Source: Oikopleura dioica (lineage: Eukaryota; Animalia; Chordata). Taken from it: a stretch of 64,000 nucleotides of DNA. Position numbers and translations under genes: made by a program. Below, piece after piece: positions 3,701 to 12,700 of the stretch. The notes beneath the pieces were generated by a model. That model had not been told where the DNA came from and did no database searches. It saw nothing but the letters and a program-made list of their open reading frames with translations. The number at the start of each line of letters is the position of its first letter. The first letter of the stretch is position 1. The stretch spans positions 8,122,001-8,186,000 of the forward strand of contig OU015567.1 in the NCBI GenBank assembly GCA_907165135.1, given 5' to 3'.

Positions 3701-6700
3701 GGCGCAGATCCGGAAATCCAAGACAGATGTGCTCGAAGTTATCGAGCGAGCTCATAATGATGAACTTGTTTGCACGCCTGGCAATACGATTCGAAACACA
3801 TTCGAAAATCATGTCAATAAGATCCTGAATGATGCGCGAGACAAGACTGGTGGATTGGCCCAGAAATCCCTTTCGGAATTTAATAACTTCAAACAAATGG
3901 TTGTTGCTGGATCCAAAGGCTCAAAGTCAGGGTTCAACAGACTTAAAAGGCTTTCTAAGGAGAGGGATGACCAGGTTCGTGAGGACTAGGTTCTTGGGAC
4001 TAGGTTGGTGGGTGCCATGTCGGAAAAAATGGTTCGTGTGACTAGGTTCGTGGAATTTGGATTTTCACATGTATTTTTGGGCAGTAAGGGTAATGGGTTG
4101 ATGACTAGGTTCGTGGGACTAGGTTCGTGAAGACTAGGTTCGTGAAGACTAGGTTCGTGAAGACTAGAATTTGGATTTTTATATGTATTTTTGTATCTTC
4201 ACCATTTTCGGTCATTAAAGGAAACGGGTTAATGAATAGGTTCGTGGGACTAGGTTCGTGAAGACTAGATTCGTGAAGACTAGGTTCGTGAAACTCGTTT
4301 TGGATATAAAATCCTACATTTTTCTTGTTCAAAAACCACGAACCTAGTCCTACGAACCCTTTAAAACCATTTAAAAACTCACGAACCTTGTCAACAACCC
4401 ATTTCCTTTACTACCCTAAAATTTTTACTCACGAACCTAGTCCCACGAACCTAGTCATCAACCCATTTCCTTTACTGCCCTACAGTTTTTACCATTTAAA
4501 AACTCACGAACCTAGTCTCACGAACCTAGTCATCAACCCATTTCCCTTACTGCCCTTAAATATAGCCCGATTTCAATACTCTGGCAGAACCCACCACGAA
4601 CCTAGTCCCACGAACCTAGTCCTCACGAACTCGTGATTCCCACTTATTCTTAGACATTCTTCTTGAGCTCGAATACAGATCAATATCTCTCAAGTCATCG
4701 CCGTGGTCGGCCAGCAGAATGTCTCTGGGAAGCGAATTCCGTTCCATTTTAATCACCGTTCTCTTCCTTGCTTTATGAAAGATGATTTTTCCCCAGAGTC
4801 AAAGGGCTTTGTGGAAAATTCTTATCTAGCAGGTCTGACTCCGACTGAATTCTTCTTCCATGCGATGGGTGGAAGAGAAGGGCTTATTGATACCGCGATT
4901 AAAACTGCCTCGGAACTTGTTGAAACGAAATTAATCTGCAGATGTAGATATAAAATTGATCAGTTAAAGTAGCTAGTCATGAGTTTCCTTCTTCAACAAG
5001 GGATAAAGACAGGATATATCCAGCGACGTCTCATTAAAGCGATGGAATCGGCAGTGGTCCGTTACGATGCAACAGTGCGAAATTCTAATAACAATATTAT
5101 TCAATTCCGTTATGGAGAAGATGGGCTTGCTGGGGAGCATGTTGAGTTTCAGAATCTATCATCCATTAGACCTTCTGATAGACTCTTTGAAAAACGCTTT
5201 AGATTCGACTACTCGGGTAAAAAGATAATGATTACCGAAATAATACACTGTAAATTTTAAGATGAAAAATCTCTTCGAAAGCATCTTGCAGAAGACGTTA
5301 TGAGAGAAGTACAGTGTTCAGAAGATGTGCACAACGAAATTGACAACGAGTTCGATCAGCTTGTCAAGGATCGCGAAGCTGTCCGATCGATTTTTCCACG
5401 GGGAGATTCCCGAGTTGTCCTACCATGCAACATCGAAAGAATCGTCTGGAACGCTCAGAAAATCTTTAATCTGAACAAAATGTCTAAGAGCGATCTTCTT
5501 CCGAATTCAATTGTCGGCAAAGTGCAAGACTTATCGGAAAAACTGATCATCGTCAGTGGAAATGACCGACTCTCTCTGGAAGCACAGAACAACGCGACAT
5601 TACTTTTCAAAATTCATCTTCGAGCATCTCTCGCGTCGAGAAGAGTGATTCAAGAATATTATCTCAATAGTGAAGCTTTCGACTGGGTTCTTGGAGAAAT
5701 TGAGTCTAAGTTCAACGCAGCAATTGTTCATCCAGGTTGATATAATCTTCTTGGAAGAGGTTTATTTTTCTAGGTGAAATGATCGGTGCTCTCGCAGCTC
5801 AGTCAATCGGCGAGCCAGCTACTCAAATGACGCTCAACACCTTTCACTATGCCGGTGTGTCCGCCAAGAACGTTACTCTTGGAGTTCCTCGTTTAAACGA
5901 ATTGATCAATATAACTAGGCTTACCGCGGTGTTTTCTATTTTTCAGGCTCTTTTGAAAAATCTCCCCATACTTTCAGAACATATGCATCAAGACAAGCCT
6001 TGAAAAACTGCACTTGCAGAATTTTCGATATGAGTCATCTTACCCCCTTTTTTGGGGGATTTTTAGCAAGAAAAAAGCACTAGTTTGATTAGAAGCGGCT
6101 TTTGAGTGCGTGCTAGATCGATTTTGATAATTTGATGCCTACCATGTGAAAGATAAGCGCAAGATGCATCGATACATATGAAATTTATTATTGCGGAGTA
6201 CTTCCTTCATATGATTCTAGAGCTCCAAAGTTGACGCAAGCAGCCAGATACGAAAATCCAATATTATCAACTTCTGATATAAGCATGCTATGATGATGTT
6301 TTATAGCTCAAATTGAAGCTTATAAATTACTGAACAAAATGGAGTGGTATTTTTTGACCAGCCGGTTGTGCTTCCGGTTCGTCGCGGTTCATACCCGGAA
6401 AAAGGTCAAAATGTAGAAATATGTATATCAAATGAATTAATTTTCAACAGCGAATCTTTTGAACATATTCAGAAGTTCAACCGCCCGGTTATTATTGCGG
6501 TTCATGGTGGTTCATGGTGGTTCAAGCGCAGAAATGAACAAATTAGCAGCAATATGTATATCAAATTAAAACATAAATTAAGAACATTCATAAAATCATT
6601 TAATAAGCCCGAACCAACCGGTTGTTCTCCCGGTTAATGGCGATTCCAAACGGTTCAAGCCGGTTCAAGCTAAAAACATGCTCAAAGTGGTTCAATATGG

Positions 6701-9700: not shown

Positions 9701-12700
9701 CGACCCGAAGAGAAGACCAGGCCCGTTTATTTAATTCAGTTTGCGACGGGGCCAAGCCGACCCGAAGAGGAGGCAAGGCCCGTTTATTTAATTCAGTCTG
9801 CCACGGATGAATTGAATGAACGCGCCTGGCCTACCCTTCGGGTCGGCTTGGCCCCGTCGCAGACTGAATTGAATAAACGGGCCTGGTCTCCCTTCGGATC
9901 GGCTTCGGCTCGTCGCAGACTGAATTGAATAAACGGGCCTGGCCTCCCCTTCGGGTCGGCTTGGCCCCGTCGCAGACTGAATTGAATAAACGGGCCTTGT
10001 CTCCCCTTCGGGTCGGCTTGGCCCCGTCGCAAACTGAATTAAATAAACGGGCCTGGTCTTTCCTTCGGGTCGGCTTCGGCTCGTCGCAGACTGAATCGTT
10101 TCAACGGGCCTGGCCTCCCTTCGGGTCGGCTTGGCCCCGTCTCAGACTGAATTGAATAAACGGGCCTGGCCTCCCCTTCGGGTCGGCTTGGCCCCGTCTC
10201 AGACTGAATTGTTTGAACGGGCCTGGCCTCCCCTTCGGGTCGGCTTTGCCCCGTCGCAGACTGAATTGAATAAACGGGCCTGGCCTCCCCTTCGGGTCGG
10301 CTTGGCCCCGTCTCAGACTGAATTGTTTGAACGGGCCTGGCCTCCCCTTCGGGTCGGCTTGGCCCCGTCTCAGACTGAATTGAATAAACGGGCCTGGCCT
10401 CCCCTTCGGGTCGGCTTGGCCCCGTCTCAGACTGAATTGTTTGAACGGGCCTGGCCTCCCCTTCGGGTCGGCTTGGCCCCGTCGCAGACTGAATTGAATA
10501 AACGGGCCTTGTCTCCCCTTCGGGTCGGCTTGGCCCCGTCGCAAACTGAATTAAATAAACGGGCCTGGGCTTTCCTTCGGGTCGGCTTCGGCTCGTCGCA
10601 GACTGAATCGTTTCAACGGGCCTGGCCTCCCCTTCGGGTCGGCTTGGCCCCGTCTCAGACTGAATTGAATAAACGGGCCTGGCCTCCCCTTCGGGTCGGC
10701 TTGGCCCCGTCTCAGACTGAATTGTTTGAACGGGCCTGGCCTCCCCTTCGGGTCGGCTTTGCCCCGTCGCAGACTGAATTGAATAAACGGGCCTGGCCTC
10801 CCCTTCGGGTCGGCTTGGCCCCGTCTCAGACTTAATTGTATGAACGGGCCTGGCCTTTCCTTCGGGTCGGCTTGGCCCCGTCTCAGACTGAATTGTATAA
10901 ACCGGCCTGGCCTCCCCTAATTTTCGCCCGTTTAAAGAGACAAAATCGATTTAAACCGGGCGGTTTGCGCATATTTAGTGTTTTATTACGCGTCCGGATC
11001 TCGTTAAAGTTTCAAAGACGTGCTTTTGAATAATTTTTCATTTGATATTCATATTGAACCATTTTGAGCATATATTCGGCTTTAACCGGCGAACCGTCAG
11101 AAACCGCCTTTTTCCACGAGAGTTACCGGGTGGTTTGGGCTTATTCAATGATTCGACGAATGTACTTAATACAAGATTCAATTTGATATGCATATTGATG
11201 CTATTTTGTTCATGTCTGGGCTTGAACCACGATTAACCACCATGAACCGCAAGAATAACCGGGCGGTTGAATTTCACAATATGCTAGAAAGCTTCGCTTT
11301 TGTAAATGATTACATTTGATAACCATATTGAACCACTTTGAGCATGTTTTTAGCTTGAACCGGCGAACCGTTTGGAATCGCCATTAACCGGGAGAACAAC
11401 CGGTTGGTTCGGGCTTATTAAATGATTTTATGAATGTTCTTAATTTATGTTTTAATTTGATATACATATTGCTGCTAATTTGTTCATTTCTGCGCTTGAA
11501 CCACCATGAACCACCATGAACCGCAATAATAACCGGGCGGTTGAACTTCTGAATATGTTCAAAAGATTCGCTGTTGAAAATTAATTCATTTGATATACAT
11601 ATTTCTACATTTTGACCTATTTCCGGGTATGAACCGCGACGAACCGGAAGCACAACCGGCTGGTCAAAAAATACCACTCCATTTTGTTCAGTAATTTATA
11701 AGCTTCAATTTGAGCTATAAAACATCATCATAGCATGCTTATATCAGAAGTTGATAATATTGGATTTTCGTATCTGGCTGCTTGCGTCAACTTTGGAGCT
11801 CTAGAATCATATGAAGGAAGTACTCCGCAATAATAAATTTCATATGTATCGATGCATCTTGCGCTTATCTTTCACATGGTAGGCATCAAATTATCAAAAT
11901 CGATCTAGCACGCACTCAAAAGCCGCTTCTAATCAAACTAGTGCTTTTTTTCTTGCTAAAAATCCCCCAAAAAAGGGGGTAAGATGACTCATATCGAAAA
12001 TTCTGCAAGTGCAGTTTTTCAAGGCTTGACTTGATGCATATGTTCTGAAAGTATGGGGAGATTTTTCAAAAGAACCTTGAAAATCGAAAAACACCGCGGT
12101 AAGCCTAAATATAACGAAACACCCAAAGGAAAGGTCCATATATAATTGCCAATTATAAGCATAGCCGGCTTTTCTGACTAGGAGAAAGGCAAATATGGAC
12201 CCTCGGAAAGACACCTTCAGTGCGTATATTTCTCCTGGGCGAGGCTGCCAAGGACGCGGAAAAATGTAATGACGTACTTGCGCTTTTGGAGCACACAACC
12301 ATGAAAACTGTAACTGCAAATACATCAATCTTTTATGATCCGGATCCGATGAATACTGTGATAGAAGAAGATCGGGACTTTGTATCGGTTTACTATGAAA
12401 TGCCGGATATTGATGTGGACAAGATATCACCGTGGCTGTTGCGAGTTGAGCTAGATAGAAAAAAGATGACGGATAAGAAGCTGTCAATGGAACAAATCTC
12501 GGAGAAAATTCATGAAGGAGACGGTTTTCTTCCTTGATTTCAGCAAAATTTTGAATTCCTTTTTGTTGCTTTTGAGAACCAATTCGAAGGTTTCGGAGAG
12601 GATCTCCATTGTATTTTCAATGACGATAACGCTGAAACTCTCACTCTTCGAATTCGAATCGTCAACAACTCGGGCAAAGAGGACGACGGAGATACTGGTA

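Follow-up and report, generated by a model that had tools for sequence, protein, structure and literature searches.

The DNA analysed here is a stretch of 64,000 nt (hereafter the window, in whose coordinates all positions are given) from the larvacean Oikopleura dioica, taken from NCBI GenBank assembly GCA_907165135.1, contig OU015567.1, positions 8,122,001 to 8,186,000 of the forward strand. It carries a gene for RPB1, matched here to POLR2A of RNA polymerase II (Pol II), and within one of the conserved exons of this gene lies a 6.2-kb foldback transposon. The gene, the split exon and the parts of the element, including its target-site duplication (TSD), are arranged as follows:

758 to 14430, plus strand: RPB1 gene, called copy B below; ATG at 758, many tiny introns, carboxy-terminal domain (CTD) going on past 14430 in further small exons
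5774 to 5915, plus strand: 5′ part of the split RPB1 exon (trigger-loop region), mapping to POLR2A residues 1086-1131
5908 to 5915, unstranded: left TSD copy, 8 bp, AATATAAC
5916 to 12107, unstranded: non-autonomous foldback element, 6192 bp, with inverted arms
5916 to 7000, unstranded: left outer arm, pairing with 11022-12107 and containing a 276-bp duplication
7108 to 10918, unstranded: GC-rich 57-bp satellite arrays, 7108-9806 in one orientation and 9808-10918 inverted
11022 to 12107, unstranded: right outer arm, the reverse complement of the left arm
12108 to 12115, unstranded: right TSD copy, 8 bp, AATATAAC, identical to the left copy
12116 to 12128, plus strand: rest of the split exon on its 3′ side (...KHPK), directly before intron 13

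The element is bounded on the left at 5915/5916 (...ATCAATATAAC/TAGGCTTACCGCGG..., also written ...GAATTGATCAATATAAC/TAGGCTTACCGCGGTG..., the slash marking the border) and on the right at 12107/12108 (...CCGCGGTAAGCCTA/AATATAACGAAAC..., also written ...CACCGCGGTAAGCCTA/AATATAACGAAACACCC...). Both borders show the hallmarks of a transposon, namely inverted ends, perfect over 16 nt, and a TSD. The 14-nt terminus occurs in only two places in the 64-kb window, inverted at the two element ends (chance expectation 0.14), and no second copy of the rest of the element was found anywhere in the window. Aligned with each other, the outer arms (1085 nt each) are 99.4% identical, with 1075 matches, 6 mismatches and 8 gap columns. 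Because the arms have diverged so little and the two TSD copies are identical, the insertion is, by its sequence, young. Differences between the left and right arm lie mainly within the first 35 nt of the left arm. On the strand of the gene, positions 5931-5945 read GTTTTCTATTTTTCAG/G, which opens like a GT donor and continues with a pyrimidine tract and CAG.

Read as a whole, the split exon corresponds to POLR2A residues 1086-1135, and the insertion separates the counterparts of residues 1131 and 1132, at a point 23 residues past the trigger-loop histidine. An alignment of the surrounding segment with Pol II chains and archaeal chains has no gaps over ~70 residues. Three marine-metagenome contigs (L002, L003 and L004; 93.5-96.4% identical) hold an exact empty site with one TSD copy (...ATCAATATAACGAAACACCC...), and a Logan contig from a sister lineage (L001; ~88% identity) holds a precise empty site, such that all four of the other haplotypes seen are empty. 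In more distant larvacean contigs and open reading frames (ORFs), LINITK(H/K/N)PKTPSV runs on uninterrupted. An earlier note on this DNA had described the insertion as exonic and placed it in a conserved RPB1 segment, and both the empty sites and the larvacean contigs bear this out. Exact look-ups in public protein and contig collections returned no record of the junction ORF (5779-6000) or of the allele-B ORF at 5300-5737; a protein search with the junction ORF matched empty-site or intron-less relatives only, and a scan of JGI metagenomes yielded no contig of the window's lineage (best DNA identity 78%). In the DNA run X1, the contig covering the exon stops at 5900, 15 nt short of the junction, and the listed loose ends miss 5915-5918. 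Synonymous letters by which the window differs from X1 include those at 5420, 5422, 5425, 5512, 5527 and 5530.

The architecture of the element is that of a foldback-type transposon: 57-bp arrays in both orientations, 276-bp arm repeats, near-perfect outer arms of more than 1 kb and no coding capacity. No transposase ORF was detected within the element, whose ORFs are only satellite translations and mirror-image arm ORFs (an autonomous hAT partner was not searched for). Elements of the hAT superfamily have the terminal motif YARNG and the target consensus nTnnnnAn. The terminus TAGGC agrees with this motif at four of five positions, and the TSD, which has the 8-bp length of hAT elements, is present on both sides and single at the empty sites of L002-L004, agrees with the target consensus at one of the two fixed positions, on either strand. 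The superfamily may be described as hAT-like or Mutator/Foldback-like, the 8-bp TSD and the TAG... end fitting hAT. Of the label "hAT-like foldback" in the earlier note, the foldback part stands, whereas the hAT part does so incompletely, given the partial terminal motif and the lack of a transposase. The depth over the arm sequence in run X1 was ~10-17x that of the flanking gene, a ratio that is not a copy number and that suggests a multi-copy family.

Copy B is interrupted by numerous introns, 18 of which were placed by homology and reading frame: nine begin with GT, six with GA and two with GC, and one is odd. A further GC donor lies in the CTD part of the gene at 14722. The AG/GC donors at 2975 and 14722 that had been pointed out before were recovered by this mapping, as was the end of intron 1, which reads CACCGTAAG; one acceptor of the gene ends in CCGTAAG. 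As assembled, the frame is broken at two homopolymers:

1466 to 1471, plus strand: A6 run breaking the frame as assembled; A8 and in frame in a DNA contig of run X1
13562 to 13566, plus strand: T5 run breaking the frame before the CTD; T6 and in frame in the orthologue L001

Between these two sites the frame is open over 1339 aa, and both frameshifts are most simply explained as homopolymer errors of the long-read assembly. A real frameshift at 13562-13566 would leave no working gene, since it precedes the only CTD of the locus. Compared with the wild haplotype L002, copy B differs by 92 synonymous and 2 non-synonymous changes over 1077 codons, and with L001 as the outgroup, 21 synonymous and one non-synonymous (V/I) changes are derived on the lineage of the window. 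From the ratio of 92 to 2, copy B is judged to be under strong purifying selection and to have been a working gene until very recently. Together with the in-frame homopolymers in X1 and L001, these codon differences speak against the possibility, raised in the earlier note, of a true pseudogene with real frameshifts. The two homopolymer runs also call for caution with any frameshift call in this assembly.

In unspliced RNA, the frame would stay open for 29 codons into the arm and then meet a stop at 6001-6003. The earlier note proposed that a GC donor and an AG acceptor in the element's own ends form a frame-restoring intron. To place this pair among its alternatives, G-starting donors from 40 nt before to 60 nt after the left end were combined with AG dinucleotides from 60 nt before to 20 nt after the right end. 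Of the resulting 60 pairs, six kept the frame without meeting a stop, each of them with the same acceptor:

5904 to 5905, plus strand: exonic GA donor GATCAA; net 0 nt, replaces NELINITKHPK with two conservative substitutions; compare the intron 4 donor GATCGT
5919 to 5920, plus strand: GC donor (TAG/GCTTAC) of the earlier note; +15 nt, inside the stem, candidate only
5928, plus strand: donor GGTGTT; +24 nt
5931 to 5932, plus strand: GT donor GTTTTC; +27 nt, hexamer identical to the real intron 14 donor
5946, plus strand: donor GGCTCT; +42 nt
5955, plus strand: donor GAAAAA; +51 nt
12102 to 12103, plus strand: AG acceptor (GGTAAG/CC) of the earlier note, shared by all six; no other AG within the final ~30 nt of the element, candidate only

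Both proposed dinucleotides are thus present, and on paper their use does give +15 nt (the 8-nt TSD plus 3 and 4 retained nt, the same in either insertion orientation) and an open frame. What does not hold is the special status of the pair, which is one of six. That six donors pass is explained by the open frame, which extends 29 codons into the arm, and finding a stop-free pair of a G-starting donor and an AG acceptor (G*-AG) that keeps the frame is no more than chance would give; under G*-AG rules, such a route can almost always be found on paper. The +15 product itself is stop-free in one of three phases (the other two read TAG or TAA), and the insertion sits in that phase. Except with the donor at 5904, any in-frame rescue adds 5-17 residues. 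At +3 and +4 the candidate donor GCTTAC carries T, unlike the GC donors of the gene, GCAATG and GCAAGC, and eight of nine non-GT donors in RPB1 have A at +3; the candidate acceptor GGTAAG is similar to the acceptor of intron 1. A perfect stem encloses both sites, the terminal ~120 nt of the two arms co-folding at -192 kcal/mol, and 13 AATAAA motifs lie on the sense strand of the gene inside the element, mostly in the right satellite block.

Two further ways of removing the insertion from the transcript were considered and rejected. Exact removal of the element plus one TSD copy by a G*-AG intron fails, as no start within 5908-5916 begins with G. Skipping of the whole split exon, which measures 155 nt without the element, would shift the frame, and this exon encodes the trigger loop. 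None of the public runs matching the stretch was RNA. Three oligo-dT RNA runs from 2026 under the same species label, compared with window positions 1250-6400 and hence with the left junction only, gave 2-4 partial reads of at most 90-95% likeness (cut-off 88%) and appear to represent another lineage of the species complex.

Some of the ordinary introns of the gene have inverted repeats at their ends. Intron 10 (4913-5008; GA-AG) possesses a perfect inverted repeat of 9 bp, gaa[CTTGTTGAA]...[TTCAACAAG]ggataaag, and the same length is found in the intron next to the insertion:

12129 to 12210, plus strand: intron 13, GA-AG, in O. dioica lineages only; terminal inverted repeats of 9 bp; located 13 nt past the insertion site

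The ends of intron 13 read gaaa[GGTCCATAT]...[ATATGGACC]ctcggaaag. In a control of 272 mismatched donor/acceptor pairs, 9 bp never occurred, and 8 bp or more did so in 0.7%. Intron 7 (GC-AG, 2975-3034) has a terminal inverted repeat of 6 bp with the same spacing as in introns 10 and 13. All three are built alike: 3-4 nt separate the 5′ splice site from the stem, and 8-9 nt separate the stem from a purine-rich ...AAAG acceptor, with the splice sites outside the stem and exact removal of the intron. Between O. dioica lineages, both halves of the stems have changed while their pairing has been preserved. L001-L004 share introns 10 and 13, which more distant larvacean contigs lack, and the two look like relics of earlier inverted-end insertions that turned into introns. 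The new element offers no G or AG at the stem distances used by introns 7, 10 and 13 and is not exactly removable under the G*-AG rule.

Intron 9 (3927-4678; 59 nt in L002, at 1778-1836) stands apart in that no in-frame G*-AG reading is possible: its borders can be drawn as TC..AG, GT..CA or AG..AC in the window and as AC..AG, GA..CA or AG..AC in L002. Its two ends form an inverted repeat of 6 bp, which in L002 reads GTTCAA/TTGAAC, and intron 9 holds an insertion of its own:

3957 to 4646, unstranded: second, unrelated foldback insertion of ~690 bp inside intron 9, with arms of ACTAGGTTCGTGA-like repeats

Since this insertion is absent from L001, L002 and one X1 contig, it is, by comparison of these sequences, young and polymorphic. 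An exonic position was ruled out for it by its location in intron 9. Downstream of RPB1 and on the opposite strand, a 211-aa ORF (17431-18066, minus strand) has a leucine-rich-repeat-like sequence.

At its left edge, the window contains part of a second RPB1 module:

1 to 345, plus strand: end portion of a second RPB1 5′ module, named copy A, with 96.6% identity to 12646-12994; it stops in the intron after the exon ...ICGIR

Copies A and B differ at 12 of 349 nt (3.4%), and all 10 exonic differences are synonymous. Copy A retains its donor (window ~338), and there is no N-gap at the 345/346 junction. Close to this junction, at about window position 355, a 1550-nt contig of DNA run X1 ends. The wild contigs with this exon all continue as copy B (3/3), and run X1 shows one sequence version per variable site. 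For the Okinawa assembly of the species, ~3.6% heterozygosity and a raw assembly of 1.5x the haploid size were reported, and haplotypes were merged with HaploMerger2 (PMC8008620), whose authors list tandem-assembled alleles as an error class (PMC5870766). If the window belongs to the Okinawa assembly, the A/B divergence of 3.4% fits two alleles. A source of insertion-free RPB1 is plausible whether copy A is a real partial duplication or an allele placed in tandem. Copy A and, again if this is the Okinawa assembly, its heterozygosity and haplotype merging weaken the argument that the element must be spliced out because the gene is essential.

Taking these observations together, we consider it probable that the window carries a young insertion allele, likely heterozygous, which breaks copy B, with RPB1 function coming from another allele or copy. 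In this scenario, a non-autonomous foldback DNA transposon would have jumped very recently into the RPB1 exon of the trigger-loop region. The animal, most likely of the Okinawa lineage of O. dioica, would be highly heterozygous and carry the insertion on one haplotype. The gene on the filled haplotype would most likely be broken, its unspliced RNA running into the stop at 6001-6003, and the animal would most likely live on an insertion-free allele, which may be the partial copy A of the assembly. We favour this account because the four other haplotypes are empty and the junction ORF has no public record, because the insertion is young and copy B was a working gene until recently, because directly upstream lies a second RPB1 5′ module whose divergence matches the heterozygosity and haplotype merging described for the Okinawa assembly, because the element has 13 sense AATAAA motifs and strongly folding ends, and because rescue, the 5904 donor aside, adds residues to a segment that is otherwise gap-free.

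Several points weigh against it. We infer the heterozygosity of the site, as well as loss of function and complementation by another allele, and the assembly shows no full-length RPB1 free of the insertion, copy A being truncated. O. dioica splices many non-GT introns, 11% (PMC8008620), and at least eight of the 18 mapped RPB1 introns are of this kind. Two young GA-AG introns of the gene end in inverted repeats like those of transposons, and one of these introns lies 13 nt from the insertion; insertions in the RPB1 gene have thus probably become introns before. Finally, in-frame splice routes do exist on paper. Even so, rescue of the filled allele by splicing at any in-frame sites appears unlikely, and slightly less likely still is the more specific proposal that the element is removed from the RPB1 pre-mRNA via sites in or near its ends, brought together by the hairpin, leaving the filled allele working.

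Among the other explanations, the one that survives best is compatible with a broken insertion allele. Copies A and B would be alleles of a single gene that the assembler set one after the other, and the animal would be heterozygous, with the filled allele B over allele A. The close agreement of the A/B divergence with the reported heterozygosity and the inflated, haplotype-merged assembly (PMC8008620, PMC5870766) argue for this view, and purely synonymous exonic differences are what two working alleles would show; the gap-free junction argues against it, as does the end of the X1 contig near 355, a hint of a real branch in another individual. We regard a tandem placement of alleles as a possibility to be taken seriously, if held tentatively.

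Much less probable is that the element is removed from the RNA via sites other than the pair of the earlier note (donor GT 5931, donor GA 5904 or sites at stem distance), leaving the allele partly or fully functional. The maize Ds element, of the hAT superfamily, is spliced from exons through sites in its ends. Moreover, Zea and Oikopleura are listed among the cases with indirect evidence of intron gain by transposon insertion (PMC3443670). Here, the six in-frame, stop-free donors that pair with acceptor 12103 include GTTTTC at 5931, which matches the donor of intron 14, and GATCAA at 5904, which resembles that of intron 4. However, every route needs the one acceptor buried in the stem, the objections from size, double-stranded RNA and poly(A) signals hold here too, and all other haplotypes seen are empty.

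A real tandem duplication with two alternative 5′ modules is more doubtful again. The copy A exon (donor ~338) would then splice over copy B to the shared 3′ exons from ~13025, making copy B dispensable. That copy A stops exactly in the intron after ...ICGIR with its donor kept and with only synonymous differences, that the 345/346 junction has no N-gap, and that the X1 contig ends at ~355, as expected of a branch there, all speak for such a structure, but it demands a 12.7-kb intron against a genome median of 49 bp, with all copy B acceptors competing, and it conflicts with the three wild contigs that continue as copy B and with the single sequence version per variable site in X1.

Least likely of all is the introner-like birth envisaged by the earlier note, in which GC 5919 and AG 12103 are spliced with the hairpin joining the sites, 6185 nt are removed, SLNIT is added after NIT and the allele is functional: the dinucleotides and the stop-free product, the +15 nt that follow in either orientation, with the insertion in the one stop-free phase of three, the GC donors at 2975 and 14722 and the CCGTAAG acceptor in RPB1, its young GA-AG introns with terminal inverted repeats, and the non-canonical introns derived from miniature inverted-repeat transposable elements known from the larvacean Fritillaria (Henriet et al. 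2019, as far as covered in PMC11282704) all speak for it, but the donor is unlike those of the gene, both sites lie in the perfect stem, where introns 7, 10 and 13 have theirs outside, the stop-free phase is a one-in-three chance by itself with five other donors equally in frame, the intron would exceed 100x the median intron length of 49 bp (PMC8008620), and five residues would enter a length-invariant segment beside the trigger loop.

Were the element spliced after all, an intron more than 100x the median size of the species would have been caught at birth in an essential chordate gene, with an older hairpin-ended GA-AG intron standing 13 nt from the newborn one. The locus would then be a natural experiment on larvacean intron gain, offering a dated, polymorphic, transposon-made intron with empty alleles for comparison. 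As the evidence stands, the window holds a young foldback insertion in a very gene-dense and highly heterozygous genome, in which random insertions must often hit exons. Its presence in an essential gene is no proof that it is tolerated, because the assembly has insertion alleles, homopolymer errors and possibly tandem-placed alleles. The young GA-AG introns of RPB1, which keep short terminal stems with the splice sites at a fixed distance outside, may be the more useful lead.

Among known systems, FB-type and hAT- or Mutator-mobilised non-autonomous elements share with the RPB1 element the long arms with subrepeats, the lack of coding sequence, the 8-bp TSD and the TAG... terminus. The RPB1 element differs in that it is without a transposase and that TAGGC fits the hAT motif in part only. 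Maize Ds, a hAT-type element, resembles the RPB1 element in its exonic position, in the cryptic donor and acceptor of its termini and in a near-precise removal, predicted on paper for the RPB1 element, that leaves a few extra codons. For Ds, however, spliced RNAs have been sequenced, and its alleles are leaky mutants and not neutral introns, whereas the RPB1 case is read from DNA.

Introners are transposon families that make introns, described from Micromonas and Aureococcus (Huff et al. 2016) and from many aquatic eukaryotes (Gozashti et al. 2022), as far as these studies are covered in PMC11282704 and PMC13326754. Like the RPB1 element, they are non-autonomous DNA transposons with inverted ends and a TSD that insert into coding exons and have splice-like dinucleotides in or next to their ends. 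They differ in measuring tens to hundreds of nucleotides and in having hundreds of spliced copies with RNA support, in contrast to one examined copy of 6.2 kb with a kilobase-scale hairpin, known from its sequence. A closer parallel in taxonomic terms is Fritillaria borealis, which belongs to the same animal class as O. dioica and shares its permissive spliceosome. Its introns have terminal inverted repeats, as RPB1 introns 10 and 13 do, and also TSDs at species-specific positions (Henriet et al. 2019, within the account given in PMC11282704). In that account they are mostly AG-AC or AG-AT, small and demonstrably spliced, whereas O. dioica uses G*-AG and the RPB1 element is fresh, giant and unfixed. 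Both the listing of Oikopleura in PMC3443670 and the Fritillaria report (PMC11282704) agree with the reading of introns 10 and 13 as relics of earlier insertions.

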